Shown in pieces: positions 6,491 through 63,744 of a DNA stretch of 64,000 nucleotides. Source of the stretch: Macrostomum lignano. Lineage: Eukaryota. Location: NCBI GenBank assembly GCA_002269645.1, contig NIVC01000905.1, positions 124,001 to 188,000 on the forward strand, in the 5' to 3' direction. Both the position numbers and the translations under genes were made by a program. Below the pieces are notes generated by a model that saw nothing but the letters and a program-made list of their open reading frames with translations, had not been told where the DNA came from and searched no databases. Positions within the stretch are counted from its first letter, which is position 1; each line of letters starts with the position of its first letter.

Positions 6491-8183
6491 TGGTGGCACC
6501 ATGAGCTGCAGAGCTAGAAGGCAAGCAAGGTGGCGAAAGTATTTTGTAATGTATCACTAATAGGTAATTACAAATAGGTAATTACAACAATTACAAATAT
6601 TGTTGAAGCTCACTGGTCAAAGCTCTGCCGTAAATGTAAAACCCAGGCGGGAACCCAGTCTTGACGGGTCTCACTCTGACAGTGACAGAGGCTCCGGATG
6701 GCAGTCCTGTGCACACAGCGGTTGTGTCTGGCACTGTGCCAGCGCAGCTGACTTCATACTCGACTCCGACATCGGGAGAGGCCGCCCACCGGGCTCTGAA
6801 GCTCGTCTCCGTCACATCCGAGATGTGCACTGGTCCTGGGATATTGTTGAGTACTACAATTGTGTTGGGAATTTTGCTTAACTGATGTTGTGAAGTTTCG
6901 CAAGCTGGTTTGGTATTTTTAGCAGCAATAAATTAGTATCAAATAATAATTGGAATACTGACGAAGCTTAGAATAATCGAATTGATTTGTTAGAGTGAGA
7001 AATGCTATGATCTCACGAGCGTATTTACACTCGTAAAAATCCAGGAAAATTCAGGTGGCCAAAGTGTGGCAGCCAGCGTGGCACCTAAAGTGCATTCTGT
7101 ACTGAATTTTCAGCTTCATTCTCACCTGTCCTTCCAGAAAGATGGAATGCAGGGCTGAGGCTGCAATTCCGAAGTCCTGCCTGGATGGAGAAGTTGTACT
7201 CAGTAGCCGCTGTGAGACCTCGAAACGTGAATGTCTCATCTGTAGTGTTGTGCTGCCGACTTGGACAGCTGGGGCAGTTTACTATGTAAAAGTACCCTGT
7301 GATTTTACGGTCTGGTTGCAGCCAATCAACTGTTATTGATGAATTTGTAGTAGAGCGAACAGCAGCCACTGTCACAGGATCCACCTGACCCGGCACCAGT
7401 TTTCCACACGACGTGCCTTGAGCAGCCGCCTCATCGCACAGCAGCAGAGCAGCTGCAGCAACCAGAAGCAGCCAGCAGCAGCAACTGCAGCGGAAGAGAC
7501 GTCGGGCTCCAGCAGACACGCAGTGCATTTTGCGAGTTTGAAAAATAAAAATTTGAGTTTGAAAACAAAATTCGCATGCTGAGCCGAGCGCAGACCTTAA
7601 ACTGAAATATGTAAAATTATTGCGATAATTTGCTATCGCCTGTTTGTCAATAAATGGAGCTCGTGCGCACCTGCTCTTATCTGCTGCAGTCCGGAGCTAC
7701 CTGGAAAATATCGACTTATGGACCCGATAATTAAGTACTCAAAAAATGGTCAGTCATTTTTCCACACAATGTCACCTTTGAGCAACCGACTCAGCTTCAG
7801 CTGACATTTTTCGAGTCTGGCAACGCTCGCCAAGTCAGCCTGAGCTCAGCTAATGTATAAAAACAGGGCCATCAGCTGAGTCGCCATGTTGCGAACAGTC
7901 ATGCATATTTTTGCTGAAGACTTGTTTATCTGTGGCTTCGTTCAGCCATGCGCAGCAGAGGCGCAGCTGTAATTCTTATCTGCAGTTTCAACAGCTGATA
8001 TTGAGCAGCTCAGAGTACATGTAGGGCAGAGCAGCGGCATGCATTTCTGGCTGTCAGTTGGAATGTCCTTTTGCAGTGTTGAGCTCTCTGGTTTTGCATC
8101 ACGGAATCACAGGTGTTTCTGTTGTCAGTTTGCTCATGGCATTCTTCAAAATACAATTTTAATTTTGATATCCATATTAACAG

Positions 8184-8490
8184 TCTGAATGCCATTCTCT
8201 GCAATCTGAATGTCATTCTCTGCAATCTGAATGTCATTCTCTGCAATCTGAATGTCATTCTCTGCAATCTGAATGTCATTCTCTGCAATCTGAATGTCAT
8301 TCTTTGCAATCTGAATGTCATTCTCTGCAAACTGAATGTCATTCTCTGCAGTCTGAATGTCATTCTCTGCAATCTGAATTTCATTCTCTGCAATCTGAAT
8401 GTCATTCTCTGCAATCTGAATGTCATTCTCTGCAAACTGAATGTCATTCTCTGCAATCTGAATGTCATTCTCTGCAAACTGAATGTCATC
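8184..8490. repeat. 21-bp intergenic minisatellite (ctgaatgtcattctctgcaat) between R2 and R1
   Basis: Tandem repeats; a 23-bp variant occupies the paralogous position at 15619-16160. Confidence 0.95.
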
Positions 8491-11430
8491 CTAATCGGTA
8501 ACCAGAAATGGAAATTTTAAACTACTTTGGTTAGAAATAGGTATGTTTATCATAAGCAACAGTTGTATGACTATATTTCATGTAATACTGAATAAGCAGT
8601 TATCAATGCAGGGTTTGAAAGTCAGAGAGAAATCAACAACAATGACATCATAGACGATCGATTTCTACTCATTAGTAGAATTGTTCTATCAGGTCTGAGA
8701 AGAGATATGGAAATTCAGTTTTCATTAGTATAGTCAATCAATGCAATGATTAGTTCTCAATGTCTCAGACATACAGTCTGTAATCTGGCTGTACTTCAAT
8801 TACAGTTTGTGCAAAATGACTCAAATCTTGAGGTTCATTTAGTTTCACTGAGCAATGGAATCTCAGTCTCTAATGTCGGTCATTCACAGCAGGGATCTCC
8901 ACATATTCAGATGACTGAGCGGAACCTCCAACCACCGTGGCGTAATCGTTTGGTGCACCGCTGACTTGACTGCCTGCGGCGATGTCAGAAGCTGGCTTGA
9001 CAGCTCTCTGTGGAGATCTGGAAGGGCTCAGTGAAATGACGGCATTTGTTAAATCGAGTTGGTGAGCACTCTGTAAAATTCGGGTGAGTTCGAGCCACCA
9101 GCACCAACAAATGGCTCACAGACCAGGTGTTCAGTCTTTAGTTTTAAGGGCAGCTCGTGGCACCGCCGCGACCCCCATTCTGCTAATTAACCTTTGTAGC
9201 ATAGCACAGGCACGTGCTCACCCAGGTTGTCTGTACATCGGCCCTGACCACCTCACCATCAGGCACGTGCACACAGATTAACGGAATCGAAACTAAAGAC
9301 TCTAAGCTTCTCTCCACCTTCCCAGCTCAGCTGCTTTGAGCACAGAAATGCGTCGCACGTGTTTTGCCGACGAATCCGAAGGAAGATCAGCAAAGCCGCA
9401 GCGACAACCAGAATGACCACCAGCGGCACCACGACTGCCACCACGATGGTCGCTGCGCCATCTGAATGTCCTTTTTTATGTAGTCTGAATCTATCAAAAA
9501 GTGTGTATCGTACATGATAGATATAATATATAATAGATATAATAGTTGGTGAGCACTCTGTAAAATTCGGTTGAGTTCGAGCCACCAGCACTAACCAATG
9601 GCTCTCAGACCAGGTGCTCAGTTTGTAGTTTGGGGACATCATTCAGCCAATGAACCTTTGTAGCATAACACAGGCTCACACAGAGTACACATCGGCTCTG
9701 ACCTCACAATCAGGTACGTGCACACAAATTAACGGAATCGAAACACGGACTCTCAGTTTCTCTGCACCTTCCCAGCTCAGCTGCTTTGAGCACAAAATTT
9801 AAGTCGCACCTGTTTTGCCGACGAATCCGAAGGAAGATGAGCGAAGCCGCAGCGATAGCCAGAATGACCGCCAGCGGCACCGCGACTGCCACCACGATGG
9901 TCGCTGCGCCACCGCCGCCGTCTCCACCAGCAGTGACAAAGTTGAGCTCAGCTGAGTCTCCAGCTAAAGTCTGGCTGACCGGCGTCACCCTCACCGAGTA
10001 CTCGGTGCCCGGCTGCAGCTGCCGCACTCTGACGGCGTACGCGTCTGAGCCGTTCGCGCTGTTGTTGACGTACTGGGTGCTGTCGCACGTCCCGGACAGC
10101 AGGTCCAGAAGGCTTCCCGTGGTGCAAGAGGGCAACTGGCAGCCGGCGTTGGTGGAGTTCAGCACCAGCAGCTTCGAGCAGACATTGGAAGCCACCTTGA
10201 ACACCTGCGGAATGTCATGAAATGCCTCGTGCGAAATGAACCATTCAGTAGCCTCAATCAAAGTACTCGTGATTCTCACCTGCACAGCGAACGCCTGCAG
10301 CAGGCCGTTTGGCAGCCGAGGCTCCTCGAACTCCACCAGCGCCTCCGCCTCCGATGGCGTCGCCGTCAAGCCGCCGACGGCGCCGCTGCGAGTCTCCGGG
10401 CTGCGGAAGGAGGCGGAGGCGACGGCGCCGGGCCCCGCGAGATTCACCGGCCACAGCGAGGCGCCGTACTCGGTCCAGGGCAGCAGCAAGCTCGGCGAGG
10501 CGCCCTTAGAGCTGACGGCGACCTCCGCCGACAGCGAGGCGTCGCCGAACTCGAAGGTCCGCACGATCACCGGCGCTGAGCAGTCGGCCGTCAGGGCCTC
10601 AAGCCGCTGCCGGGCCTCCTCCGACTGAAGCTGGAGGCGGTGGCGGCCGCAGTCGGAGCAGTTCAGCCGCCGGGCCGCCGCGCAACCTCCCGGACCGTCC
10701 AGTCGCAGCTCGAACTCGAACACGACGCCCCGGCCGAGCTCGGGGCTGAGCGGCTTCCAGCTGAGGCGGACGGGACCGCCAGGGACCGCCAGCGGCTGCA
10801 GGCCGCCGGACACCGCGGGCGCCTCGCCATCGGGCAGCCGCCGCTCCGCCCTGTCGCTGCCGCGGCTGCAGCCGCCGCCCGTGCAGGCGCCGACGCGGCA
10901 GAAGCCGACGTGGGCCGGCAGCGGCGGCGGCTCCAGCGGCAGGCGGGTCATGTCGGCCGCCGCCTCCTTGGCTCCGATGCGAATCTCAGCGCCGTCCGGG
11001 AAGCTCAGCGAGCCCCAGGCCACCGAGTAGTTGCGGATGACGCCGTTCGGCTCGCTGGGAGCCCGCCAGTCGCATAGCAACTGCGATGATGCATCGTCCA
11101 GCCTCACCGACTGCGGCTGCGACGGCGCGTCCTCCAGCGTTCGAACCTCCGACCTCTGGGGCAGCGAGGCCAGGCCCGACAGCTCGGCGACCGCCTCCAC
11201 CGAGTAGTTGGTGAACGGCCTCAGCGGCTGCAGAGCCACGGTGCACCTGCCGGAGTCCGGCCGGCAGCTGTTGGTAGCAGCAGCGAAGCTCCCGCTGTCT
11301 GCGTGGGCGGCCGCAGTCAGCAGCTCGGAGCCGGAGCTGGCAGTCAGCGACACCTCGACGGCGCGCTTGTCCGGCAGCAGCGACACCAAAGGGCTGCCGG
11401 GCGCTGCAGGACGGCGGCGGGGAAACCGGG

Positions 11431-12120
11431 CTCAGAACCAAGACTCACTCAGAACCAAGACTCACTCAGAACCAAGACTCACTCAGAACCAAGACTCACT
11501 CAGAACCAACACTCACTCAGAACCAACACTCACTCAGAACCAACACTCACTCAGAACCAAGACTCACTCAGAACCAAGACTCACTCAGAACCAAGACTCA
11601 CTCAGAACCAAGACTCACTCAGAACCAACACTCACTCAGAACCAACACTCACTCAGAACCAAGACTCACTCAGAACCAACACTCACTCAGAACCAAGACT
11701 CACTCAGAAACAACACTCATTCAGAACCAAGACTCACTCAGAACCAAGACTCACTCAGAACCAAGACTCACTCAGAACCAAGACTCACTCAGAACCAACA
11801 CTCACTTAGAACCAAGACTCACTCAGAACCAAGACTCACTCAGAACAAACACTCACTCAGAACCAACACTCACTCAGAACCAACACTCACTCAGAACCAA
11901 CACTCACTCAGAACAAAGACTCACTCAGAACCAAGACTCACTCAGAACCAAGACTCACTCAGAACCAAGACTCACTCAGAACCAAGACTCACTCAGAACC
12001 AAGACTCACTCAGAACCAAGACTCACTCAGAACCAACACTCACTTAGAACCAACACTCACTCAGAACCAACACTCACTCAGAACAAAGACTCACTCAGAA
12101 CCAAGACTCACAACAAAGAC
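11431..12120. repeat. 18-bp minisatellite, F-E intron of R2
   Basis: Same unit as 5532-5730, about 3.5 times longer. Confidence 0.95.
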
Positions 12121-12509
12121 TCTGAGCTGAACTCACGCATCTGCAGCTGCTCAGCAATGACGATCTCCGAGCCCTCCTGCCTCAGCCCGGATTTGTTGGC
12201 CACGGCAGCCACCGCCACCGTCAGCTTCAGCGAGAGCAGCTCCGCCTCCGCCAGGCTCAGCAGCAGCCGCGTCGAGTTGAACGCAGCCTCCCTCAGCAAG
12301 TCGGGCTTCGAGGCGCTGCTCACGCGGAACTGCAGCAGGTCGGCGCCCTCGGCAGCGCTGGAAGTCCAGTTGAGCAGCAGCACCGCCTCAGCGGGCTGCG
12401 ACTCGCTCGGATGCGACACCGTGGCAGCGGCTGAGGGTCGGCTGGCGGGGTCGGCGATGAGCAGCGGCCCTGGGGAGGGCGGGGAGATGGAGATTGAGAT
12501 TGAGCGGAT

Positions 12510-13410
12510 TGACACTGTGAGCTGAGTGACACTGTGAGCTGAGTGATACTGTGAGCTGAGTGACACTGTGAGCTGAGTGACACTGTGAGCTGAGTGACAC
12601 TGTGAGCTGAGTGACACTGTGAGCTGAGTGACACTGTGAGCTGAGTGACACTGTGAGCTGAGTGACACTGTGAGCTGAGTGACACTGTGAGCTGAGTGAC
12701 ACTGTGAGCTGAGTGACACTGTGAGCTGAGTGACACTGTGAGCTGAGTGACACTGTGAGCTGAGTGACACTGTGAGCTGAGTGACACTGTGAGCTGAGTG
12801 ACACTGTGAGCTGAGTGACACTATGAGCTGAGTGACACTGTGAGCTGAGTGACACTGTGAGCTGAGTGACACTGTGAGCTGAGTGACACTGTGAGCTGAG
12901 TGACACTGTGAGCTGAGTGACACTGTGAGCTGAGTGACACTGTGAGCTGAGTGACACTGTGAGCTGAGCTGAGTGACACTGTGAGCTGAGTGTCACTGTA
13001 AGCTGAGTGACACTGTGAGCTGAGTGACACTGTGAGCTGAGTGACACTGTGAGCTGAGTGACACTGTGAGCTGAGTGACACTGTGAGCTGAGTGACACTG
13101 TGAGCTGAGTGACACTGTGAGCTGAGTGACACCGTGAGCTGAGTGACACTGTGAGCTGAGTGACACTGTGAGCTGAGTGACACTGTGAGCTGAGTGACAC
13201 TGTGAGTTGAGTGACACTGTGAGCTGAGCTGAGTGACACTGTGAGCTGAGTGACACTGTGAGCTGAGTGACACTGTGAGCTGAGTGACACTGTGAGCTGA
13301 GTGACACTGTGAGCTGAGTGACACTGTGAGCTGAGTGACACTGTGAGGTGAGTGACATTGTTAGCTGAGTGACACTGTGAGCTGAGTGACACTGTGAGCT
13401 GAGTGACACT
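12510..13410. repeat. 17-bp minisatellite upstream of exon F in R2
   Basis: Same unit as 6112-6490. Confidence 0.95.
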
Positions 13411-15618
13411 TACAAGTCAAGGCGGCTGTCGATGGCAGTGAGAGTGAGGAGGCAAGCAAGTCATACCCATCCTGCTGACACGGACACGAATTCAGCCACA
13501 CACATGCTGAGCCCACAGCCACCCTGACTTTCTCATCAGTAGGGCCAAGGATCAGTAGAAGTTTGAATTGCTTATCAGAAATCTCACAGAAAACATCGAG
13601 TCAAACAGGTTTTACCACATTCTTAAAACAAAAAAATAAAAAAAAGATAAAACTTTTTTTCATGCACATATTTCGCCTTAGTAGCATCTTTCTTGAGGTT
13701 AATTTGATCAACCAAGAAAGCTGCCAAAGACATGCCGGGTTCATGCGATCGTCCGTAAAGAACATAAATTTTTTCTATTTTACGTCTTGCTAATTCAGTT
13801 CAAGGCAGCTACGAGCTAGAGCTGAATATCTGAGGTCTTTTGTTAATTGACTACAAATGCTTTGTAAAAACATCATAAAAACATCAGTAAAACATTATAA
13901 AATATTTTGAAGCTCACTGGTCAACGCTGTACCGTAAATGTAAAACTGAGGCGGAAACCCAGTCTTGACGGGTCTCACTGTGACAGTGACAGAGGCTCCG
14001 GATGGCTGGCCTGTGCACACAGCGGTTGTGTCTGGCACTCTGCCAGCGCAGCTGACTTCATACTCAACTCCGACATCGGGAGAGGCCGCCCACCGGGCTC
14101 TGAAGCTCGTCTCCGTCACATCCGAGATGTGCACTGGTCCTGAGATATTGGTGAGTTCTGCAATTGTGTTAGGACTTGCTAAATTGATGTTGTAAAGTTT
14201 CGCGAGCTGCTTTGGTATTTGAACAGCATTAAATTTGTATTAAATAAAAATTGGAATGCTGACAAAACTCAAAATAATCAAATTGATTTGTTAGAGTGAG
14301 AAATGCTATGATCTCACGAGCGTATTTACAGTCGTACAAATGCGGGAGAAATTCAGGTGGACAAAGTGTGGCAGCCAGCGTGGCACCTAAAGTGCATTCT
14401 GTACTGAAGTTTCAGCTTCATTCTCACCTGTCTTTCCAGAAAGATGGAATGCAGGACTGAGGCTGCAGTTCTGAAGTCCTGCCTGGATGGAGAAGCTGTA
14501 CTCAGTAGCCGCTGTGAGACCTCGAAATTTGAATGTCTCATCTGTAGTGTTGTGCTGCTGAGCGGGACAGCTGGGGCAGCTCAGTGTGTAAAAGTACCCT
14601 GTGATGCCACGGTCTGGTGGCAGCCAATCAACTGTTATTGATGAATTTGTAGAAGAGCGAACAGCAGCCACTGTCACAGGATCCACCTGACCCGGCACCA
14701 GTTTTCCACACGACGTGCTTCGAGCAGCCGCCTCATCGCACAGCAGCAGAGCAGCTGCAGCAGCAGAGCAGCTGCAGCAGCAACCAGAAGCAGCCAGCAG
14801 CAGCAACTGCAGCGGAAGAGACGTCGGGCTCCAGCAGACACGCAGTGCATTTTGCGAGTTTGAGAAACCTGTGTGACGAAAATTGTGTTTGTGCTGATCC
14901 GATAAAAGTCCCAGAGGTGGCTTTTGCAGTCAAATTTATTGCGGACTTTCGCTCTAAAAAAACTCGCACACTGAGCCAAGCTCAGGCCTTAAACTGAAAA
15001 AAGCAAAGTTATTGCAAAAAGTTGCTATCGCCTGTTTTGCGTCTGCCATGATAAGTAGAGCTTGTGCGCACCTGCTCTTATCTGCTGCAGTGCAGAGCTA
15101 CCTGGAAAATAGCAACTTATGGATCCGTCAATACAGTACTCAAAGTCATGGTTAGTCAGGATTTTCCTAACGAGGTCACTTTGAGCAACCGCCTCAACGG
15201 TCAACGGCCTCAGCTGCAGCTGACATTTTGAGTCTGACAACGCTCGCCAAGTCAGCCTGAGCTCAGCTATAAACAGAGCCATTAGCTGAGTCTCCATGTT
15301 GCGGACAGTCACGAATATTTTTTTCTTCAGAAAGACTTGTTTATCAGTGGCTTCGCCCAGCCATGCGCAGTACAGACACAGCTGTTCTTATCTGCAGTTT
15401 CACCAGCTGATATTGAGCAGCTCAAAGTAGTGCAGAGAAGCCACATGCATGGCTGACTGTCAGTTGGAGTGTCCTTTTGCAGTTTTGAGCAGTAGCCCTC
15501 CGGTTTTGCATCACGGAAACACCTGGCTTATCCACAGGTTTTCTGTGCTATCAGTGAGTCATATTGCTCAAGACTCTCTTCAAAATACAGTTTTCATTTT
15601 GATATCAATATTAACAGT

Positions 15619-16160
15619 CTGAATGTCATTTCCTATGCAATCTGAATGTCATTCCCTACGCAATCCGAATGTCATTTCCTATGCAATCTGAATGTCATTC
15701 CCTACGCAATCCGAATGTCATTCCCTATGCAATCTGAATGTCATTCCCTATGCAATCTGAATGTCATTCCCTATGCAATCTGAATGTCATTCCCTACGCA
15801 ATCCGAATGTCATTCCCTATGCAATCTGAATGTCATTCCCTATGCAATCTGAATGTCATTCCCTATGCAATCTGAATGTCATTCCCTATGCAATCTGAAT
15901 GTCATTCCCTATGCAATCTGAATGTCATTCCCTATGCAATCTGAATGTCATTCCCTATGCAATCTGAATGTCATTCCCTATGCAATCTGAATGTCATTCC
16001 CTATGCAGTCTGAATGTCAATCCCTGTGCAGTCTGAATGTCATTCCCTGTGCAATCTGAATGTCACTCATTATGTTATCTGAATGTCATTCCCTATACAA
16101 TCTGAATGTCAATCCCTATGCAATCTGAATGTCACGTACTCATTATGCCATCTGAATGTC
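15619..16160. repeat. 23-bp intergenic minisatellite (ctgaatgtcattccctatgcaat) between R3 and R2
   Basis: Tandem repeats. Confidence 0.95.
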
Positions 16161-16493
16161 TTTTTTATGTAGTCTGAATGTACCAATAAGTGTGTATCGT
16201 ACATGCTAGATTTAAAATATATTTCATATAATTCTGAAAAAGCAGTCATCAATGCAGGGTTTGACAATCAGAGAGAAATCAACCTGACATAACAGGCTAT
16301 CGATTGCTACCCATTAGTAGTATTGTGACATCACAGCAGAGCACAGATATGGAAATTCAGTTTTCGTTAGAATAGTCAATCAATGCAATGATTAGTCTGC
16401 AATCTGTGTGTAACACATATTATTATATTTTGTGCAAACAGACTCAAATATTGAGGTTCACTCAGTTTCACTGAGCAATGTAACCTCAAGTCT

Positions 16494-19400
16494 CTAACGC
16501 CGGCCATTCACAGCAGGGATCTCCACATATTCAGCTGACTGAGCGGAGCCTCCAACCACAGTGGCGTAATCGTTTGGTGCACCGCTGACTCCGCTGCCTG
16601 CAGGGCTGTCAGAAGCTGGCTTGGCAGCTTTCTGTGGAGATCTGGAAGGGTTCAATGAAATGACAGCACCTGCTGTTAAATTAAGTTGAGCACTCTGTAA
16701 AATTCGGTTTGAGTTCGAGCCACCAGCACTAACCAATGGCTCTCAGACCAGGTGCTCAGTTTGTAGTTTGGGGACATCATTCAGCCAATGAAAGTTTGCA
16801 GCATAACACAGGCTCACACAGAGTGCACATCGGTCCTGACCACCTCACCATCAGGTACGTGCACACAAATTAACGGAATCGAAACCGGGACTCTCAGTTT
16901 CTCTGCACCTTCCCAGCTCAGCTGCTTTGAGCACAAAATTTAAGTCGCACCTGTTTTGCCGACGAATCCGAAGGAAGATCAGCGAAGCCGCAACGATAGC
17001 CAGAATGACCACCAGCGGCACCGCGACTGCCACCACGATGGTCGCTGCGCCACCGCCACCGTCTCCACCAGCAGTGACAAAGTTGAGCTCAGCTGAGTCC
17101 CCAGCTAAAGTCTGGCTGACCGGCGTCACCCTCACCGAGTACTCGGTGCCCGGCTGCAGCTGTCGCACTCTGACGGCGTACGCGTCTGAGCCGTTACCGC
17201 TGTTGTTGACGTACTGGGTGCTGGCGCACGTCCTGGACAGCAGGTCCAGAAGGCCTCCCGTGGTGCAGGAGAGCAACTGGCAGCCGGCGTTGGTGGAGTT
17301 CAGCACCAGCAGCTGCGAGCAGACATTGGAAGCCACTTTGAACACCTGCGGAATGTCATGAAATGCCTCGTACGAAATGAACCATTCAGTAGCCTCAATC
17401 AAAGTACTCATGATTCACACCTGCACAGCGAACGCCTGCAGCAGGCCGTTTGGCAGCCGAGGCTCCTCGAACTCCACCAGCGCCTCCGCCTCCGAGGGCG
17501 TCGCCCGCAGGCCGCCGACGGCGCCGCTGCGAGTCTCCGGGCTGCGGAAGGAGGCGGAGGCGACGGCGCCGGGCCCCGCGAGGTTCACCGGCCACAGCGA
17601 GGCGCCGTACTCGGTCCAGGGCAGCAGCGAGCGCGGGGAGGCGCCCTCGGAGCTGACGGCGACCTCCGCGGACAGCGAGGCGTCGCCGAACTCGAAGGCT
17701 CGCACGAGCACCGGCGCTGAGCAGTCGGCCGTCAGGGCCTCAAGCCGCTGCCGGGCCTCCTCAGACTGCAGCTGGAGGCGGTGGCGGCCGCAGTCGGAGC
17801 AGTTCAGCCGCCGGGCCGCCGCGCAGCCGCCCGGACCGTCCAGTCGCAGCTCGAACTCGAACACGACGCCCCGGCCGAGCTCGGGGCTGAGCGGCTTCCA
17901 GCTGAGGCGGACGGGACCGCCAGGGATTAGCAGAATCGTCAGGCCGGACACCGCAGGTGCAACGCTGTCCTCTGAATTCCGTGAAAGTACCAGCACATTC
18001 AGAGTTGATTTGAAAACAGGCTGTAACAAAAGTCAGTACAAACGCAATTCTCACTGGTCAGCTGGTTGGACAGAGCTGTGATGACGTCATCAAAGCCGCC
18101 CGCCTTCTGCACAGCCACCCGCAGCTCATATTCCTGTCCAGACTGCAGGGAGCCGCAGGTGGCAGACGGAGTCGATGAAGACGTAATCGAGACTTCTCCT
18201 GAGCCGACTCGCTTGCAGGTGAGCTGGTACGAGACGCCAGAAGTGCTGGATGGCTGCCAAGTCACAGAGATGGCGGTCTCATTGGAGCTGTACTGAGCTG
18301 AGCTGGCGTCAATGCTGAACAGCTCTGCAATGAAACGGACCCAATAGAAGCGAGCTGTGCCTCATCAGAGCAGCTGCAATCATTTGCTGAGCTCCAACTT
18401 ACTGGTCAGCTGGATTGGCAGCCAGGTGACAACTTCATCGAAGCCGCCCTGCTTAGTGACAGCCACACTCAGGTTGTAGGCCTCTCCTGACTGCAGATTG
18501 CTGAAGGTGGCACTCAGATACTTTGATGGAGGCAGAGATGTTGAATTCCCTGTGCTGACTCGCCTGCAGGTCATCCGGTACAGAACTCCTTCAGTGATGG
18601 ACGCCACCCAAGTCAGGGAGATGGAAGTCTCTGTGATGGTGAAACTCACTAAGCTGGCGTCAATCGGGAAGAGCTCTGCGGTTGCGAGGTGGGTGAGCAG
18701 CTCCTGACTTAAAAGTCCCGATTTTTTCGAGTTATAATCTGATACAGAGACTGCTAGCCGCCTTTAGTGAAATGGCTGTTTGGGTTTTTGCTGTGTGGTG
18801 GGGTGGTGAGTGCGTCGTCCACGCCGTGTGTCTATTTAGACCGCTACCTTTGTGGCTAATTGCGTTTGCTCAGGTTTAATTTTTTTTACTTCTAAATCAT
18901 GTCAAACACCTTCGTACTCATACTGCCTCCATCAAACAAAGCGCTTCGAGAAGCCCTTAGAGAGCGCGGCCTGCCTACTCATGGCAATAGGAAAGAGCTG
19001 AAAAGTCGCCTGAGTCGCATTGCCAAGGAGCTCGAGCAGGACAGAAGCTCATCCCGTCGTACTCAAGTGGACAAGACACCACCATCGAATGCTGGCACAC
19101 CCGATTTAATTAGTCTGGCTCCACCTGAGAGCGAGATGCAACTGGTAGCGGGCGCCTCGGCCGAATGTTGAGCGGCGACGGGAGGCAGAGTCGAGGAACA
19201 GCTGCAGAAGACTGAACTGCGTATTCGGCTGCTGGATCTCGATCTCGAGGCAGAACTCGCTGAAGCGAACCAATGTGGCGCGACGGCCGCGAAAGAATGA
19301 GTCTGACGAGATCAGACTCCCGGTGAGTGGCATGATTTGTATAACGAATGTATTTTGGGCAGACAGGGGCTGAAGCTTCGCATGCTCATGCGCCGGTGGT

Positions 19401-22400
19401 GTACAGAGTGGTTGATTATATCAGTGAGCGTCATCAGAGGCAAGGAATCCAGTCTGCTGTTGGAGTGGTAAAGCCTGAGTCCCTGTTGTTTGGCAACTTT
19501 ATCTCCAGCAGCCATAAATTACAGGTTCAAATGCTGCATGTTGTTGATGGTAGAATCGATTTTTCCGAGTCGATCATCTCCGACCTGCTAGATTTAGTCT
19601 TCGATCGCACAAAAGTCATGTCATATGATGACGAGTTTCGGCTTCTCCAGCTTGACGGAACGCGGTGGAATGCTATCAGCACAGTCCTGGGTCTGGTGGC
19701 AACACACTTGATGGCACCAACAAAAATGATAAATGCAACAGCGTCTAAAAAGCGAACGCAGCCACGGGTCTGTTTCGACTTCAACAGCTCATCAGTGAAG
19801 CAGACGCACACAGCCGCACTGCGAAGCCCGAGCCCACGCTGATGGAGACTCGGGTCAACTTTAAAAAATCTAGCGTGTGATTTGAGGCACAGGACTCAGA
19901 GTCTATCGTCGGGTTACCCTCCTGTGCCCCCACGACGGTGGAACCGCCCACCCCCAAGTGACCGAGTTCAACAGAGTTGTCAAGCAGTCTTGTCTTTGCA
20001 GTTTGGCTGGGTCCGAGATGCCGGAGGACCGAGTCAGGTTCGTGCTCGATGGTTTGAAGAACGACTTCTGTATTTCTAACAAAGTTACTTTTGTACAGAT
20101 CAGTTACTTTCACCAGCAAGCTATTGAGGCCCAGGTGCGCCAGGAGCTTGAGCAGCACCGCTAATGGCGCTGCCAAGCAGGCAATCGACCGCTCTTCGGA
20201 AGTGCACTTGGTGCGATCGCTAAGGCAGACTCGTCTTCCATCTGCCTCATTCATGACTGCAGCCTGCCACCTGGCGCCTCAGTCAATGAATTTTTCGAGT
20301 CAGAACGGAATTTGTGCTTCACATCTGCCAGCACCTTTGCCTTGTTTTCGGCTCCCGTATTTTATTTTCACAAAGCGCCTCCCTGCAACGCCGCCTCGCC
20401 TCCTCGCCGGAGCAGATGCTTCGCAGTACCGTAGGGCGATCTCATCAGCCGTCCAGTCCTGGCGTAGCTACTCAACAAGAGCAAGACTAACCCGACTCAA
20501 TCCGACCAACCCGGCTCGATCCGACCAACCCGACTCAGTCGGACCAACCCGGCTCGATCCGACTAACCCGACTCAATTCGACACACCCGACTCACCTGGT
20601 CAAATGCCACCTGAGATCTTTTAACAGTCTGCGTACTCACATCAGTGCACTGTCCAGCTGGTTAAAAGCCTTTGGTACTGAGGACCTATCAAAATACCAC
20701 CTGGTCCCACTGCTCGTTCACGGCGCCAAACGGAGGATGAGCCAGCGGCCAAGACGGAAGCTGCCGATCTCGCCTGCGATGTTGTTGTCTGCGAGGAAGT
20801 GACTTACGTCGTAATTCGAGCAGTTCCCTTGATAGAGTCTGCTGGCCTGTGACGCTGATTGCTGGTTGGGGGATGATTCGGCGTTCCAGTCTCCTGCCCA
20901 GTCAGCAGTCCGCTTCGCCAATCTCCGTCTCAGCCTTTCAACGCCACCCAAATGTGGTCGTGCTCTCCGTCAGTTATGGCAAGACGAACCAATTCTTCGC
21001 GAAGCTGCTCCGAGTGTTGCTTCCAAGGCTAAAAGAAGGACACCCGCTTTGCCCGGTGTCTGCGTTAGAGAGCCACATTCGCATCAGAAAGCTTGGCAAC
21101 CCGTGTTCTCTTATCAGTTGGCGAGCGGATCCTCTGCTGCCTAGCAACTGATGGGCAGGACGCTCGCTCGCTCGTTCTCAGCGCACAGCCTGTGCAGAGG
21201 AGGCGCTGCCTGGGCCCATTATTCTTGTGCTGTCTGCTCAAGAGGTGAAATGCGTCGGAGATTGGCGAAGTGATGCTGTGGCTGCCGCAGATTTAATGCT
21301 TTTAAAGAGAATTGCCTTGATGGGCTTTTACATGTGATTTCAGGGTTCATATTTCTGCTCTTATCCCTTGCCTTACCCTTTTTCTGTAAATTATCTGATT
21401 CGTTCGTTTTTTGTTAGTTTGGCCTTGGGGCGCATCCCAATGCCTGTTTTTTCTTTGTCTCCCCTTCACTAACTGATTGATGAATCTCTACTGAATGCAA
21501 ATATCAGTTTCTTTTGAGCACGCAGCAATTTAAATACAGCGCAAAATAAGTGGATATTCTCGCTTCTTCAAGCGGTGTTCAGAAAGTGGCGGCAGTTTTG
21601 GCCCTAGGGCTCATTCCGTGAATGCTGAAAGCTGCATCTTTGATTTACCTTAAAGCGCAATATTTAATCTTTCTTTAAAACTTACCTCAAAAGTTATTGC
21701 TGAATATGTGACCCATTGCTTAGCAATTTGACGATCATTATTCACATTTTTAATGCAGAACAATCCATTACTACAAACAATGAATTGTCTGTAGGATCGT
21801 CAAACAGAAAAACAATGAAAAGAATCAGCGGTCGCAGCACGTGACAACGATTTGTCTATGGCTCGCGCCTACCGGCGCTCGCCAGACAATCGTTGTCACG
21901 CACTGGGACCGCTGATTATTTATCTATTGTGGGTGTTTGTCTTACAGTAAAGCTTTATTTGTCTATGTCAAGCTTAAGAGACAATTTTGTACTGCCATAC
22001 GCTGCTTATTACCTCTTTCCTAAGTATCAAATGATTGCAAATGCTCAACGTAGCACTAAGCCCTTTACATTCCGTGGTAGTTTGTGGGTAAAACCACAAC
22101 CACGGATAAGCAGCAGTGGCGGGCAGTGAGGACTCAATCAACATCTAAACAGTCACTGTAAACTCAGTCACACTTTCTGATATCTGATGAAATTCTAGCA
22201 ACTTGAAATTTTGACGCTGCGCACCTTATGACGTGACAGTCAGAAGCATTTGCCACAGAGCTGTTCTGCTCCTCAAGTATTCATCTGCATCATTGATTAT
22301 GTTGAGGTAAATATTGTTTAACAAGATGCATGCAGGTAAACTTGTGGCACCGCAGCAGCTGAGCAAGACTCACTGGTCAGCTGGTTGGACAGAGCCGTGA

Positions 22401-25400
22401 TGACGTCATCAAAGCCGCGCGCCTTCTGCACAGCCACCCGCAGCTCATATTCCTGTCCAGACTGCAGGGAGCCGCAGGTGGCAGACGGAGTGGATGAAGA
22501 CGCATTCCAGACTTCACCTGAGCCGACTCGCTTGCAGGTGAGCTGGTACGAGACGCCAGAAGTGCTGGGTGGCTGCCAAGTCACAGAGATAGCGGTCTCA
22601 TTGGAGCTGTACTGAGCTGAGCTGGCGTCAATGCCAGAGAGCTCTGCAAAGTTTCAATGCACGAATTTGTTTAAGCGATGTGAATTCGGCAAATTTACCT
22701 TAAAAATTCTGCGATGACGCCATAGTTTTTCATTTTTGCGTTCAGTTCAACAGTCCAACTATTTAAAGTAGCTGCGAAAACTGTCTGCATTTTTTAAACT
22801 GAGGCCTATTGCTTTTATTTTGTGTTTACCAGTAGAACATTTGCCTTTACCGCAACGACGCTACTTATTCTGTTCTACTTCCCATAAAAAGACATTAAAA
22901 AGTGTTAATGTACTACTCACATTTTATTCAGTAGTATACCAAGTAGCATGTATAAAATGAAGTACTGAATCACATATATATTTTAATTAACCAATCACAA
23001 GAGAGTAAAGTCGAACATGCTATTTATAGCAACCGACCAATCATGCGTGACCTACAATTGTCAAGTGTAGACCCATCTGCGATTCATCATTCGGCCTGCA
23101 CCGGATGAACCGATCAAAGAAAGACCAAAATAACCCAACCACGATAACCAGTCATGCGCGCTTACACTAGACTAGTGGCTTAACTTTCTACCCTGTCATG
23201 CTTGACAGCAACCAAAGCGTGACCCTTTGACATTTACGAAAAAGGTGATGAACGACCTCACGAGGGTCTGTTTCTCTATAAACACAAGTGGTCCGAAGCG
23301 GACCTGGAGCCAACAACCGAACCTACAGAAGGAGAAGCTCCGAAGAGGAAGCCTCAGCAGGACTTCCTGCAGACCAAGTCAATCGAGACTCGGCTGAGTT
23401 CTTGCGGTAAGCCTAACTCATTTGCGCCTGTTGTTTAAGTCGACTCACTGTTGTTGTTGAGTTAGAGTCTGTTGAGACTCTTGAGTCTATTGAGGCTCCA
23501 TTGGTTGTAGTCTCCAGAAGGACTACCCTGATAGATCTTAGAGGACTATCAGCGACTACCGGAGCTATACCTAGAGTGCATTAAGGCACTTCTAGAAGGA
23601 GAAGGCTTATTTGAAACCGCATTAAGGCGCAGGGATCCCCATTTATAATACGAAGCTTCTGATTGGTCCGAACGACAGATACCGGCCGGAAACGACTTCA
23701 GTGGAAGTAAAAGGAACGCGAACCTGGTCTACGAAATATAGACGTCTAACGAGTAAAGAAGACAGAGAACTGCAACACAAGGAGGAGCTCTCCAAGACAG
23801 GAATCAAGGTAGGAGATACCTTCATTTGATTACTGGGTTGCCTAGCAGTAGCTAGAAGTGATTGTTCCTTGATTACTGAGAAAGTCTTGGTAGTAAGGAA
23901 CACATCACATACTCTCTGGTACCCCCGATGGAAATCACGTGTAGGTATGTTTTGAGTGAGAAATACTTTTTAAATATTTTATACTCAAGTATTAATTTCA
24001 ATAAATACTAAGACCAAGCGTATAAAACAATTAACACGCTTTGTCTACAGTCTCAGCTCAGCAAAAAATCTAAGCAGTTCAGTTGCTCATAAATCTCAAG
24101 TTGAATACTAATGAGCATGCATAATGCAGAATATGGAGATGCAAAATCTTGACTGCTCAAGCCAAAGCCATCGATTCCTACTGTCAAATCAATGCACACG
24201 GCTGGCTCAACTGACGGCGATGCGAACGCGAGCCTTGACTTTTGCCACCGCTTTTTATTTCCAAAGCAAAGCACCAGAGGGAACTCACTGGTCAGCTGTC
24301 CAGGTAGAGACGTGATGACGTCATCAAAGCCGCCCGCCTTCTGCACAGCCACCTGCAGCTCATAGGCCTGTCCAGACTGCAGGGAGCCGCAGGTGGCAGA
24401 CGCACTGGATGAAGACGCAGTCGAGACTTCACCTGAGCCGACCCGCTGGCAGGTGAGCTGGTACGAGACGCCAGAAGTGCTGGATGGCTGCCAAGTCACA
24501 GAGATGGCGGTCTCATTGGAGCTGTACTGAGCTGAGCTGGCGTCAATGCCGAACAGCTCTGCAATTGATGAGCATCTCTGACGAGTTTGATTGCTACGGA
24601 AGTTTCTTTGATTGATGCTGAATTGATTTAGAGTTAATATCATTACAACACGATTTGAAACTGCAGTTTGATCAAATCTCAGCTCACAGTTCAAATTAAC
24701 AGAGTTTGCAAAATACATCAATAATACTTTATAGTTTTGGGCCTGTCTGTATTGCAGTGCAGCTAAAATATCTCCAATATGGTAATGAAACTCACTGGTC
24801 AAAGCTGTGCCGTAAATGTAAAACGCAGGCTCAAACCCAGTCTTGACGGGTCTCACTCTGACAGTGACAGAGGCTCCGGATGGCTGGCCTCTGCACACAG
24901 CGGTTGCGTCTGGCACTCTGCCAGCGCAGCTGACTTCATACTCGACTCCGACATCGGGAGAGGCCGCCCACCGGGCTCTGAAGCTCGTTTCCGTCACATC
25001 CGAGATGTGCACTGGTCCTGAGATTCTGGTGAGATCTGCAATTGTGTTGGGAATTGCTTAACTTCCACCAGATGGTTTGGTATTTGAACAGCATTTGAAT
25101 CAGTAATTAATACAAGTTGGAACAGAATTCATTTAATAATCCAACTCGGATTAGACATAAAGTAAGACATTGCATGTATTTTTCTTAGAAATTCAGGTGG
25201 CCAGGTGAAGCAGCCAACGGCGCTTTCGAGGACCCGCACAGTTTTCATTCTCACCTGTCCTTCCAGAAAGATGGAATGCAGGGCTGAGTCTGCAATTCCG
25301 AAGTCCAGCCTGAATTGAGAAGCTGTACTCAGTAGCCGCTGTGAGACCTCGAAATGTGAATGTCTCATCTGTAGTGTTGTGCTGCCGACTGGGACAGCTG

Positions 25401-25660
25401 GGGCAGTTAACTATGTAAAAGTACCCTGTGATGCCACGGTCTGGTGCCAGCCAATTAACTGTTATTGATGAAGTTGCAGAAGAGCGAACAGCAGCCACTG
25501 TCACAGGATCCACCTGACCCGGCACCAGTTTTCCACACGACGTGCCTTGAGCAGCCGCCTCATCGCACAGCAGCAGAGCAGCTGCAGCAGCAACCGGAAG
25601 CAGCCAGCAGCAGCAACTGCAGCGGAAGAGACGTCGGGCTCCAGCAGACACGCAGTGCAT
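16494..25660 (-). CDS. R3: apparently intact type I membrane FN3-repeat receptor (A-B-C-C-D-C-E'-G-T), about 8 FN3 domains, TM, tyrosine-motif tail
   Basis: Exons 25660-25255, 25035-24796, 24558-24289, 22643-22374, 18675-18403, 18324-18055, 17971-17421, 17345-16951, 16641-16494. Splice phases are consistent (1,1,1,1,1,1,0,2) and I found no stops. The FN3 repeats resemble the PTPRQ/usherin/sidekick type, but there is no phosphatase domain. Confidence 0.85.
18770..21450 (+). mobile_element. Degenerate, internally deleted tyrosine-recombinase (DIRS order, Ngaro-like) retrotransposon in the R3 C-D intron
   Basis: SAP-like LREALRERGLPTHGNRKELKSRL (18899 ORF); gag-like VCFDFN remnant at about 19770; RT N-terminus-like FVLDGLKNDF..QVRQELEQHR (20040-20160). 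YR motifs GAKRR..RKLPISP, WPVTLIAGWGMIRRSSLLP, GKTNQ..LCPVSALESH, FSAHSLCRGGA (21175-21207) and VKCVGDWRSDAV (21245-21280), with stops and frameshifts. Boundaries are approximate. Confidence 0.8.
21840..21900. repeat. 61-bp inverted repeat (hairpin)
   Basis: cgtgacaacgatttgtct ... agacaatcgttgtcacg. Confidence 0.7.
22870..23910 (-). mobile_element. About 1-kb LTR-like insertion in the R3 C1-C2 intron
   Basis: Absent from the homologous R0 intron (470-1117). Minus-strand start TGTGATG, CCAAT then TATAAAT (about 23645-23670), AATAAA near 22922. No TSD found. Confidence 0.4.
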
Positions 25661-26283
25661 TTTGCGAGTTTGTGCCAATCTGATTAAATCCAGTCAAAAT
25701 TAACGCGGACTTTCGCTTTTGAGAAAAGGTAAAACTCACGCACGCTGAGCCGACCACAGGACTTAAAGTAAAAAAGCAATTTTTTTCTCGAAAAGTCACT
25801 ATCGCCTGTTTTGCGTCTGCCATGATAAGTAGAGCTTGTGCGCACCTGCTCTTATCTGCCGCAGTGCAGAGCTACCTGGAAAGCCGCTATCAAGTCATGG
25901 ATCTGGAGGCTTGCTGCAGTGCTTCTGACAATTTGCATGCAAATATGGCTGGTCAAGGAGCAATTTAAAACACAAGGAGACTCTACTCAGTAAACCTAAC
26001 AGTCTTCTGAGATCTGAATTCTGAGATCACTGCATAAGTTTGAATCACAAGTTACCTAAACAAATTAAGCCCAGTATCAATAATTATTATTATATTTTTT
26101 GACAGCGCCCTACAGTGACCCTGCCGAACGAACACGGATTCTCTCAGTGCGAGGACTTCAGGTAGCTCGACTTCCATGGTGCTGAATCTTGACTCCATTG
26201 TCTCCGACAGGAGGTCCCTGACCTGGCGATCAGCGCACCAGCTCAGCATCATCCTTAACTCCGTAGCGAGGGGTGACCTAACC

Positions 26284-26710
26284 CAGAAGCGTCACCATGG
26301 ATTTTATGGTGGGGGCGTAGCCAAGAAAATTATTTTCAGAATCAGTGTTGTCAGCACTCATTTTAGTGCCACAGGCACTCTTTTTAGCGCTGCAGGCACT
26401 CATTTTAGCGCTACAGGCACTCATTTTAGCGCCGCAGGCACTCATTTTAGCGCTACAGGCACTCATTTTAGCGCTACAGGCACTCATTTTAGCGCTACAG
26501 GCACTCATTTTAGCGCCGCAGGCACACATTTTAGCGCTACAGGCACTCATTTTAGCGCTACAGGCACTCATTTTAGCGCCGCAGGCACACATTTTAGCGC
26601 TACAGGCACTCATTTTAGCGCTAAAGGCACTCCTTTTAGCGCTACAGGCACTCATTTTAGCGCCGCAGGCACTCATTTTAGCGCCAGGGGCACTCATTTT
26701 AGAGCCCCGC
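26284..26710. repeat. Truncated relative of the 37.5-kb element with a 21-bp minisatellite
   Basis: Shares the head CAGAAGCGTCACCATGGATTTTATG..GGGGC..TAGCCAAGAA. Array ggcactcattttagcgctaca at 26355-26700. Confidence 0.7.
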
Positions 26711-29603
26711 ATGGATTGGTTACCAGGGGATTTAGGCTAACAGGGAGACACATGCAGCCGAGTACAGGGACTCTGCTTGGGGCATGCTCGGGAACTCTGG
26801 GCTCAATCTAGAGGATTTCTCAGCAGGGGATCCTTTGTGGCTGTGAGCGAGGCTGACTTGCGGCTTTGATTACTAAGAGTAGTGTGAGGCGAACATGTAC
26901 TGTCTATAGTTTAGATTGCTCAGGGCGAAGGGACGCGTCAGCATGGGGTTGCAACCTTCCTACTGCCATTCTGTGCCAAGACTCGCTAATCCCCTCTACC
27001 GCACGCACACTCGGACCCGCAGCACGCACTCACAGGCGGGCTTTGCACGGGGAGAGGCCATTAGCTTGCCCAAACTTCCTTTTGCTTTGCCACCCAGGGA
27101 GAAAGGCTTAGCAAGCCATGAGTGAAATGATGGTGAAAGTGTGAATAATGAGGAGTTTAGTAATAGTTAACGATTAGGCCCTTAGGCAAAGTAATCAGAC
27201 AATTAGGCGGCTTCACTATTGAATAAATACAGCAAGTAATACGGTATCACAATTGGCTCAGCTCTCTAATCAAGCAATGGAAAATAGGCAAAACCCGGAT
27301 AAGCAAGGCAATTAGAGCACAAATTAGTAACAGGAACTTACCGGCAGCTGCACAGAGAGAGAGAGAGAGCGCGACGGAGTGACCGTGGGCGGCTGTTGGC
27401 TGTAGACAGGCAGGCTGTAAAGCGGCGATGCGCTAAAGCGACGAGGCGCTGATGTAGTTTAGGCGATGCTGAAGATGCTTGGCGGTAACAGACCGCGGGC
27501 CGGCAGAGGTTCGTCCTATAGACGAATGGGTCAGATCGGTGTCTGACAGCGAGTCCACAGTAGGAAGAGAAGGGACGCGTAGTAACGCTTCTGAGGATTC
27601 TCATGCCGAAAACCGCTTCCTTAAATAGCCTTCCCAGCCGCCGCTCCAAGGTCGTTTCCATGACTCCCTCTCTCTGATTGGCTGGCGGCGAAATGACGTC
27701 AGAATGAGTCATGATGAGAAGCATGAGAACGGCATAACAACATGAGAAATGGGGCAATTGCGCAATCCGGAAGTGGGGTGAGGGGATAATTGGCGCAGCG
27801 GGAGGTCGAGAAAGTGTTGCGCAAGCAAAAATTGAGTACAATGGGGCTGGGGTCGGGAACAAAGGAAATGGAAATCGGGGATAATTGGGGAGAATCGAGA
27901 ACAATATAAAAGTAAACATTGGAGAAAAGGTGCTAATTGGGTGCGAAAAGGAGAACAAAAGAACCAAAAACGAGAACAATAGAAGCGGAGGTGGGTGGGT
28001 GTCGCATGAGAAATTTGGGGAGGAGAACAATAGCATGAGAAAGGTTGCGCAAGAGGGGGTGGTGAGTCATCGATGAGTCATCGAGGGGAAAGAGGGTCAC
28101 AAGGTTTGCGTCACCGTTTGGGAGTTTACTAAGGGTTGGGAGGCGGTGAGCGCACAAAGTACTGTGAGTAGGCACGGGAAGAAGGGGGGACAGCGCAGGA
28201 AAAACAGTCCAAAAGGAAAGAAAAAGAGGGATTTGGGGGAAAAGTACATAATAGATAGGCTAGAGCGCATAGGAAATAGAGTAGCGGGTGAGGGAGCAGA
28301 GGGGGATAGGGGCTCCGGAAAGGCTCGTGTGGTGGGGTGGGAGACGGAGCCGAGGCAGCAGGAGGCGCAGCAGAGCGGGAGTCAGCAGGCCTGGTCAAAG
28401 ACCTGGCCCAGTCTCGACAGCTCTGCTCAAGGGCTGCACCGAGATCGGAGGTACTTTTGAAAAATTTCCCCTGCCATATCCCGCGACCAGAGCGTGGTTA
28501 CATCATTATTTCCATAGCGGGTCTCAGGGTGTGGTGGTAGACTGTAGGGACAAAGCATTGGCATGTCCCCATATCTTTTACTGGGAAGACAGGTTCCCCT
28601 TGACCTAACCGAAGGCGCGCCTTTTCCGCCTTCGAGCATCGTGTACGGGAAGCCGTGCCCGTGACTAGCACGAGAGCAGTCGATGGACGCACTGTACAGG
28701 TCCCTGCTGCGGTACGCGGGCTCGAGTAACCGGCCCTTAGCGTCACCCTGCTCCAGAGACGCCAGATGTTGCTGGGCAGCTGCCTGAGGAGCCACGAGGG
28801 CGGTGATCAGAACCCGCTGGCGCTGACTCCCTTGCCAAGGGTGAACTTTGCTTTTGTTCAAAGCTTTTCATGCTAACCTGAAAGCTGTCAAACTTTACCC
28901 CCACAGTCCGTTGGCACATCTCCCTCTCGTGTGCGCTCAAGGGCCGTGTCTTCTGCGAATATCTACTATTTATTAGCCATTGTGATGGTAGTGCTAAACA
29001 GCAATACATTTGGTGCTAATGAAGTTCCGGCTTTTTATGTCCTTGAACTTGAGACCAGGTATCCATGTGAAGTTTCAGGTACCTATCGATCTCCCTCGAT
29101 AACTACACACAAAGGTGACCGCAATGCCTTGGATGCCAAGTTTCGAGTGTATTGTAAGACATAAGCACAAAATATTTGCATGAGTCCCAGATGGTCCTTG
29201 GCGATGGCGAAGCGCTAGCGGTGAGGCGTTATAAACATTATATTGCATATTCGCAGGCACACCTCAAACACACTCTCACACATCCTCATCATCTCAGGCA
29301 TGTACACTGGGTTTTTTGCATTCTGAGTCCAGAATCAGGCTGCTAAATTGAAAACCAGGATGCCAGCAGGCATCAGTCGAAAAAGTTCAAAATCTAATAA
29401 AACACCAACATCTCTACCTTACCCTTTACACTGTTGAGCCTCTCTGACCCACAGAAGCGGCAGACATCTGCCAACTCCCATGTCTACAGATTGCTCAAAT
29501 TTGAAAATTGATAGACATCTTTTGTAGCAATACTAAGAGTCCCAATTAATACAAAATTAAGGGTATTACATGTACAAAATCCTAGCATGTACTCTCCGTT
29601 GTT

Positions 29604-63702: not shown

Positions 63703-63744
63703 GTGAGGCCGCCTGCGACTGGGAGCTCCATTGCGAGGCATGAG

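Follow-up and report, generated by a model that had tools for sequence, protein, structure and literature searches.

A two-tyrosine cytoplasmic tail on a phosphatase-less paralogue of a type III receptor tyrosine phosphatase in the flatworm Macrostomum lignano

Do the two tyrosine motifs at the C-terminus of a fibronectin type III (FN3) receptor of Macrostomum lignano, a free-living flatworm, form a signalling tail, and to which class of motif would such a tail belong? The locus that raises this question lies in a 64,000-nucleotide stretch of contig NIVC01000905.1 (assembly GCA_002269645.1, positions 124,001 to 188,000 of the forward strand), hereafter the window, where three related genes on the minus strand (copies R1, R2 and R3) end in the same kind of short exon (Table 1). 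A sequence-only reading of this DNA had described the exon as encoding a pair of motifs, YATV-x9-YVEI, that resemble the immunoreceptor tyrosine-based inhibitory or activation motifs (ITIM or ITAM). That observation is correct and its label over-specific, and the interest of the locus comes mainly from its phosphatase-paralogue context, which is new.

Copy R3 is the gene BOX15_Mlig007331g1, since the NIVC01000905.1 locus of the annotated product (PAA75074.1, here P0020) is, base for base, the reverse complement of window positions 6494..35660. The coding part of its terminal exon is entered in phase 2, and the minus-strand translation of 16640..16494 reads SPQKAAKPASDSPAGSGVSGAPNDYATVVGGSAQSAEYVEIPAVNGRR followed by TAG, the other two reading frames across the exon being closed. 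The upstream exon (exon G) ends in CGG CAA AAC AG/GTGCGAC and the acceptor at 16641 reads CCCTTCCAG/A, so that the split codon AG+A encodes Arg and the protein runs across the junction as ..LRIRRQN-R-SPQK... The joining of a 148-nucleotide phase-2 exon to exon G (..LRIRRQNR), as originally proposed, is therefore borne out by the translation, by the splice sites and by two independent gene models, as the R3 tail is the exact C-terminus both of GenBank PAA75074.1 and of UniProt A0A1I8HM46 (P0002). The GenBank annotation of the assembly was built from StringTie/TACO RNA-seq assemblies and a mapped de novo transcriptome with TransDecoder open reading frames (ORFs) (PMC5730564), and because the GenBank models derive from such data the R3 terminal exon, its acceptor and its frame have transcript-level support. 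Another tail exon or frame in the transcripts, which according to the sequence-only reading would speak against it, was not found, the RNA-seq-derived model ending in exactly the R3 tail; an exact-product look-up in cDNA contigs gave no match for P0002 and, for P0020, the genome contig only.

The terminal exon supplies the distal 49 residues of a 55-residue cytoplasmic tail. This contains only two tyrosines, each preceded by an acidic residue (D-YATV, E-YVEI) and followed by an aliphatic residue at +3, which stand 13 residues apart and at about 31 (YATV) and 44 (YVEI) residues from the transmembrane segment (TM), the stretch spanning both motifs being APNDYATVVGGSAQSAEYVEIPAVN. The nine-residue spacer reported previously stands, but its sequence in R1 is VGRSTQSAE and not VGGSAQSAE as in the earlier consensus. 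The start of the tail, R-SPQK (16629-16640, minus strand; SPQR in R2), is in all three copies a full [S/T]-P-x-[K/R] consensus for proline-directed kinases, and a second SP site (DSPAG) is present in the R3 tail.

The product of R3 is a type I membrane protein, and the 148-base segment is its last coding exon. P0020 has an N-terminal signal peptide and gave, in a Pfam scan, six or more FN3 matches (fn3 147 bits and Fn3_Dep-1_3rd 49 bits, above threshold), with no phosphatase domain (PF00102) nor any other domain besides FN3 types. The AlphaFold2 model of P0002, a single-sequence prediction made with no alignment, is poor overall (mean pLDDT 41.8) and was used for the TM helix and the tail alone; it contains a helix at residues 311-343 with a pLDDT of 87-93 in its membrane-spanning core, and renders the tail as a low-confidence coil. 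From the signal peptide, the single hydrophobic helix followed by RIRRQNR, and this coil, it follows that the tail is cytoplasmic. The tail is lineage-specific and probably disordered, and Ala, Ser, Gly and Pro abound in it.

Searching proteins with P0020 returned matches that are all from M. lignano, including BOX15_Mlig029524g2 (P0023, 1238 aa), in which a Y_phosphatase domain (PF00102, 232 bits) with the signature HCSAGVGRTG follows an FN3 ectodomain and a TM of the same kind. An FN3 ectodomain, a TM and a single phosphatase domain make up the architecture of the type III, or R3-subtype, receptor protein tyrosine phosphatases (RPTPs), of which a long Cys-containing juxtamembrane FN3 domain is a family feature (PMC5336234). 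Copy R3 and P0023 are identical at 141 of 148 positions (95%) up to AFAVQV, then at about 48% through the long last FN3 domain with its four cysteines, while the TM region gives a separate and weak alignment (16/34, 47%, E=16). The 49 residues from the tail exon have no similarity anywhere in P0023 by protein alignment, and in the phosphatase-type paralogues of the wider family the cytoplasmic region is altogether different from the tail of R1-R3. By its sequence, the R3 gene is paralogous to a receptor tyrosine phosphatase of type III (R3-subtype, DEP-1-like) and has itself no phosphatase domain.

The break in identity between R3 and P0023 coincides with a 75-nucleotide intron that follows AFAVQV. 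This in-frame intron (GTGAGA/GTGTGA...CCGCAG) separates AFAVQ from VFKVASN at 17346-17420 (R3), 4307-4381 (R1) and 10205-10279 (R2), all on the minus strand; in R3 it contains a TGA, and in R1 and R2 it is open and merged into long ORFs. The FN3 exons of gene E, up to the same boundary, are nearly identical to those of R1-R3, and gene E is probably the phosphatase-bearing partner of the cluster, with its 3' end outside the window. Such mosaic identity implies that the short-tail genes consist of an ectodomain exchanged recently with a phosphatase-type paralogue and a membrane-proximal module (last FN3 domain, TM and tail) that is older and has diverged. Two other readings of the tails in this family were considered and rejected. 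Derivation of the tail from an RPTP C-terminus fails in that the alignment with the cytoplasmic part of P0023 is weak and confined to the TM and juxtamembrane region, leaving out the tail. The proteins P0001 and P0003 (..LLGLCGTAGAAGTACRDF) had been candidates for an alternative tail; comparison with P0023 (..LLGLVWYRRRSSQPD..) suggests instead a frameshifted or truncated gene model of the phosphatase type.

Which motif class the tail belongs to depends on the definition that is applied. The strict ITAM pattern Yxx[LI]-x6-8-Yxx[LI], the extended one Yxx[LI]-x6-12-Yxx[LI] and the immunoreceptor tyrosine-based switch motif (ITSM) TxYxx[VI] are matched in none of R3, R1 and R2; the YxxPhi pattern (Yxx[LIVMF]) is matched by both tyrosines, and the relaxed pair Yxx[LIV]-x6-12-Yxx[LIV] by the tail, in all three. 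When the ITAM is defined as Yxx[I/L]x(6-9)Yxx[L/I] (PMC9546547), the spacer VGGSAQSAE lies at the upper edge of the permitted length, one residue beyond the classical 6-8, and the tail misses the definition by a single residue, a V where I/L is required at +3 in the first half-site, the second half-site being canonical. The ITIM pattern [SIVL]xYxx[IVL] is matched in R2 (SEYVEI) and not in R3 or R1 (NDYATV, AEYVEI), so the ITIM label does not hold for the intact, annotated copy or for R1, where N or A occupies position -2. The canonical ITIM previously noted in R2 is a genuine match to the pattern, but the R2 gene has a broken start and no annotation; the valid ITIM thus rests on the least convincing copy, whose tail exon moreover belongs to an older, partial duplication. 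Where ITIM pairs bind SHP-type phosphatases, the two motifs usually stand 20-30 residues from each other, and a distance of 13 residues between the tyrosines is ITAM-like rather than like such pairs. Other sorting motifs, NPxY and [DE]xxxL[LI], were not found in the tail by pattern scan. In composition-matched shuffles of the tail, the relaxed paired pattern appeared in 0.3%, both tyrosines in YxxPhi context in 1.3%, and at least one YxxPhi in 23%; the arrangement is unusual for one tail and not compelling, as the pattern was relaxed post hoc and a proteome contains thousands of tails.

The two further copies of the exon announced by the sequence-only reading were found exactly there, at 3589..3442 (R1) and 9017..8870 (R2), and translation confirms SEYVEI in R2 and AEYVEI in R1 and R3. 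The donor and acceptor at the tail junction are conserved in 3/3 copies. Identity between copies is 90.5-93.2% for the tail exon and 88-93% for the intron next to it; indels occur in introns and 3' flanks but not in the exon of any of the three copies. R3 is intact and carries an annotation. In R1, one base of a CCCC run near 4844-4847 that is present in R2, R3 and gene E is deleted, by which the large FN3 exon is split into two frames; the deletion may be a real pseudogenising frameshift or a homopolymer error of long-read assembly. In R2, the signal-peptide exon carries about 17-20 extra bases compared with R3 and R1 (~14763-14782, minus strand), in a GCT-rich (GCTGCT-type) repeat, because of which the frame of its ATG ends early (ORF 14674..14979), out of frame with the FN3 domain. 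R2 is absent from the genes called in the GenBank record, and the older partial duplication that holds its tail exon (8800-9460) is about 84% identical to R1. Remnants of the TM end of exon G are found on the minus strand at 9361-9471, in the last intron of R2, and at 3060-3146, 3' of the R1 tail exon (GHSDGAATIVVAVVVPLVVILVVAAALL.. and GHSGGAATIVVAVVVPLVVVLVVAAARLG), and are traces of older partial duplications.

We infer a signalling role for the tail, and phosphotyrosine docking with ITAM-like geometry would be its single most likely function, a reading that we advance tentatively. The two acid-preceded tyrosines (D-YATV and E-YVEI) would be phosphorylation sites: ligand-driven clustering of the receptor would lead a Src-type kinase to phosphorylate both of them, and the phosphotyrosines would then dock SH2 proteins. 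The 13-residue geometry would fit an ITAM-like bidentate site for a tandem-SH2 kinase of the Syk/Shark type, and pYVEI alone might also suit Src-family or SHP2-type SH2 domains. The sequence pYVEI differs little from pYEEI, the optimum of Src-family SH2 domains, and also fits the N-SH2 domain of SHP2 (pY-[I/V]-x-[V/I/L]), and a spacing of 13 residues between tyrosines is better suited to Syk-type than to SHP2-type tandem SH2 domains. The ectodomain that in the paralogue is linked to a phosphatase would here be linked to recruitment of a kinase or adaptor. Docking is favoured because the tail is flexible and has just two tyrosines, with an acidic residue at -1, an aliphatic one at +3 and the distance given above, because the closest relative is itself a phosphotyrosine enzyme, and because there are invertebrate precedents and flatworm Src, Syk and Csk kinases. 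The ITAM of Draper binds Shark and the ITIM of Draper-II binds Corkscrew (PMC8092387), the tails of Hydractinia Alr carry ITAM/ITIM-type motifs (PMC9546547), and Src, Syk and Csk kinases exist in flatworms (PMC12837073; PMC2820527).

A number of results weigh against docking. The strict ITAM definition fails at YATV in 3/3 copies, and the ITIM and ITSM definitions both fail in the intact copy; no Pfam family, the ITAM model included, matched the three tails at E<=10, a search from which very weak matches may be lost through the HMMER filters. Two of the three copies, R1 and R2, look damaged. Schistosome SmTK4, the one characterised flatworm Syk, was reported to be without the SH2 sequence used for ITAM binding (PMC2820527). 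Variable residues among the three copies number 10 of the 48 in the tail, and on this basis the probability that the eight motif residues are all spared is 0.13, and that both tyrosines are, 0.62; for the longest invariant run, of 13 residues, P=0.30. The contrast drawn by the sequence-only reading, invariant motifs between varying flanks, is thus literally true but not significant, and the copies are not independent given how alike their exons and adjacent introns are. In pairwise Nei-Gojobori comparisons among R1-R3, omega is 0.5-0.9 in the tail, 0.4-0.8 in the last FN3 domain and TM and about 0.2 in the upstream FN3 exon, with a dN in the tail 3-4 times that of the upstream FN3 exon. The nonsynonymous to synonymous counts in the tail (8:3, 6:4 and 9:5 versus a 2.9:1 site ratio) are indistinguishable from neutrality, and the tail evolves close to neutrally. 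In an exhaustive phmmer search of exon G and the tail against 1.84 billion representative proteins, only P0002 covered the tail, the remaining matches being generic FN3, and metagenome contigs scanned with the tail peptide yielded no relative; the tail being without homologues in proteins or metagenomes, deeper conservation cannot be shown. In the literature, nothing was found on Mlig007331 or on ITIM/ITAM in Macrostomum.

Much of this evidence would be accounted for if the motifs had no function, the tail being a near-neutral, young one gained on loss of the RPTP phosphatase exons and its Yxx[V/I] strings being due to chance; the protein would then act as a decoy, an adhesion molecule or a ligand sink through its ectodomain, or the copies would be decaying. 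The omega of the tail and its neutral substitution counts, the non-significant conservation tests and the orphan status of the tail agree with this explanation, as do an exon identity barely above that of the intron, the frameshift in R1, the broken start, rearranged 3' end and missing annotation of R2, and the permissiveness of YxxPhi, which nearly a quarter of shuffled tails contain at least once. We nevertheless regard it as somewhat unlikely: the pairing of both tyrosines is rare among the same shuffles, the tail exon is free of indels in three copies, unlike introns and 3' flanks, R3 is transcribed and spliced to the tail exon, and the module of exon G and tail looks old from its 48% identity to P0023 (versus 95% upstream), yet its frame is open and its splice sites are intact.

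Functional explanations other than docking have also to be weighed. The YxxPhi strings might be sorting signals, read unphosphorylated by AP-2 mu or other adaptors and leading to endocytosis or to lysosomal or basolateral sorting. A placement several residues from the membrane suits AP-2, and both motifs, in all copies, lie suitably in a flexible tail and fit the pattern with no SH2-specific feature being needed; the match carries little information, however, as the pattern is permissive, the acidic -1 residue and the regular ITAM-like spacing are not features of such signals, and the other sorting motifs are absent. On balance, a sorting function, which would be compatible with phosphotyrosine signalling and not exclusive of it, appears unlikely. 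Even less support can be given to an inhibitory ITIM pair, by which the phosphorylated tail would recruit a tandem-SH2 phosphatase of the SHP2/Corkscrew type and restore in trans the phosphatase activity that was lost. Here the residues at -2 in the intact R3 and in R1 (N in the first motif, A in the second) are set against the match of SEYVEI in R2 to [I/L/V/S]xYxx[I/V/L], the R2 gene itself being disrupted and not annotated, and a tyrosine distance shorter than that of known bidentate SHP2 ligands is set against the fit of pY-V-x-I to the SHP2 N-SH2 preference. With Draper-II and Corkscrew as an invertebrate precedent (PMC8092387), this remains a very improbable reading of the sequence.

If the tyrosines are used, as phosphotyrosine docking would have it, the locus would offer lophotrochozoan ITAM-like signalling on a receptor with an RPTP-derived ectodomain and, next door, a probable phosphatase-bearing twin, and would show how kinase- and phosphatase-coupled receptors can arise from one ligand-binding module by exon swapping. 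If they are not used, it still illustrates cleanly how a tandem receptor cluster loses a domain, undergoes exon-bounded gene conversion and decays, and it would be a caution on reading short tyrosine motifs as signalling sites. As M. lignano is tractable to transgenesis, the question is testable.

Large minisatellites with a 17-nucleotide unit (20-53 copies, 92-97% matches) occupy 6112-6508, 11431-12111, 12501-13410, 60966-61819 and 62204-62549, in introns of R1, R2 and gene E, and give long spurious ORFs, for example of SLSSQCHSAHSVTQLTV repeats; further tandem arrays with units of 21 and 23 nucleotides lie at 8184-8489 and 15618-16134. Within the span of gene D, a neighbouring paralogue, a perfect 15-nucleotide tandem repeat, GCCCCTGGTGCTAAA, is present in 48.8 copies (100% matches) at 31717-32448. 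After its FN3 domains gene D has a Cys/Trp-rich region (CATADWLQFNGFCYLLVKGS..WTGLYRDEADGG), C-type-lectin-like by eye and without a Pfam match, which is repeated in the more distant relatives P0025-P0028; no obvious TM segment or tyrosine tail was seen by eye in this gene. At 18899-19171, on the plus strand inside an R3 intron, an ORF encoding a SAP domain (30.4 bits in Pfam) adjoins several unassigned ORFs (19348-21151) and may belong to an inserted element or to an unrelated gene of the opposite strand. Between the minus-strand genes and the plus-strand gene E lies an AT-rich block (40001-50000) with a GC content of 33-38%, versus 44-67% in the receptor cluster.

Table 1. Features of the receptor cluster, in coordinates of the 64,000-nucleotide window.
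Feature	Position	Strand	Remarks
R3, whole coding sequence (BOX15_Mlig007331g1 / PAA75074.1, P0020)	16494..25660	minus	940 aa; signal peptide, FN3 array, TM, tyrosine tail; no phosphatase domain
R3 exon G	16951..17345	minus	long membrane-proximal FN3 with 4 Cys, Gly-rich stalk, TM helix, RIRRQN(R) stop-transfer; ends in phase-2 donor
TM segment AATIVVAVAVPLVVILAIVAASLIFL	16971..17048	minus	tblastn coordinates; 26-residue hydrophobic segment followed by RIRRQNR
R3 terminal exon, coding part	16494..16641	minus	148 nucleotides including stop, phase 2: 1 base + 48 codons + TAG; from translation and splice sites
First tyrosine motif, (ND)YATV	16557..16568	minus	YxxPhi match; not ITIM (N at -2); not an ITAM half-site (V at +3)
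Second tyrosine motif, (AE)YVEI	16518..16529	minus	YxxPhi match; valid ITAM half-site; ITIM only in copy R2 (SEYVEI)
R1 exon G (last FN3 and TM)	3912..4306	minus	
R1 tail exon	3442..3589	minus	..NDYATVVGRSTQSAEYVEIPAVNDRH, then stop
R2 exon G (last FN3 and TM)	9810..10204	minus	
R2 tail exon	8870..9017	minus	..NDYATVVGGSAQSSEYVEIPAVNDRH, then stop; sole copy with a pattern-matching ITIM
Remnant TM exon end GHSDGAATIVVAVVVPLVVILVVAAALLIFLRIRRQN	9361..9471	minus	inside last intron of R2; donor context AG/GT changed to AC/GT
Gene D, neighbouring paralogue	35888-30161	minus	resembles P0024 (BOX15_Mlig022912g1, 651 aa); same signal peptide and first FN3 domains
Gene E, paralogue	51182..64000	plus	runs off the window; FN3 exons 96-97% identical in DNA to R1-R3 up to the end of the AFAVQV exon; closest protein P0023

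Among known systems, the R3-subtype RPTPs (PTPRJ/DEP-1, PTPRB, PTPRH and PTPRO, Drosophila Ptp10D/Ptp4E, and P0023 itself) share with copy R3 a signal peptide, an ectodomain of FN3 domains only, of which the juxtamembrane one is long and contains cysteines, and a single TM. To these are added the Pfam match to the Dep-1 FN3, the 95% identity to P0023 in the FN3 exon that precedes the last intron, and a homologous last FN3 domain and TM. The differences are all on the cytoplasmic side, where R3 has no PTP domain, where its 55 residues are unrelated to the juxtamembrane or C-terminal regions of P0023, and where the C-terminal YxN phosphorylation motif of these phosphatases (PMC5336234) is absent.

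With the ITAM receptors (Draper/Shark, Megf10/Syk, Hydractinia Alr) R3 has in common that it is a type I receptor with a short disordered tail and two acid-preceded Yxx[aliphatic] motifs, at a spacer of 9 within the permitted 6-9, and with Hydractinia Alr also a tandem cluster of duplicates and pseudogenes. By contrast, its first half-site has V and not L/I, its ectodomain is an FN3 array and not one of EMI/EGF or Ig type, and there is no NPxY. The ITIM/ITSM receptors (PECAM-1, SIRP-alpha, PD-1, Draper-II) share a cytoplasmic Yxx[V/I], and SEYVEI of R2, but in the intact copy the -2 residue is wrong, TxYxx[V/I] is absent, and the two motifs are much closer to each other than in typical ITIM pairs. 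Judged by its sequence, the tail resembles an ITAM without belonging to that class, nor is it an ITIM.

The arrangement of the cluster recalls the paired receptors (KIR, Ly49, SIRP, PILR), in which linked and recently exchanged genes have near-identical ectodomains, as R1-R3 and gene E have (96-97% in DNA), and cytoplasmic modules that differ, as those of R1-R3 and gene E probably would. Here, however, one partner would possess an intrinsic phosphatase and not a phosphatase-recruiting ITIM, the phosphatase type of gene E being the probable one. A flatworm paired-receptor system derived from an RPTP, although distinctly unlikely, can be envisaged, in which a shared ectodomain would be kept alike by gene conversion bounded by one intron, and the older module would link it in one case to an intrinsic phosphatase domain and in the other to an ITAM-like tail recruiting a kinase of the Syk/Shark type, so that one ligand could have opposite phosphotyrosine outputs. 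If true, this would be an independent invention of the activating and inhibitory logic of vertebrate immunity.

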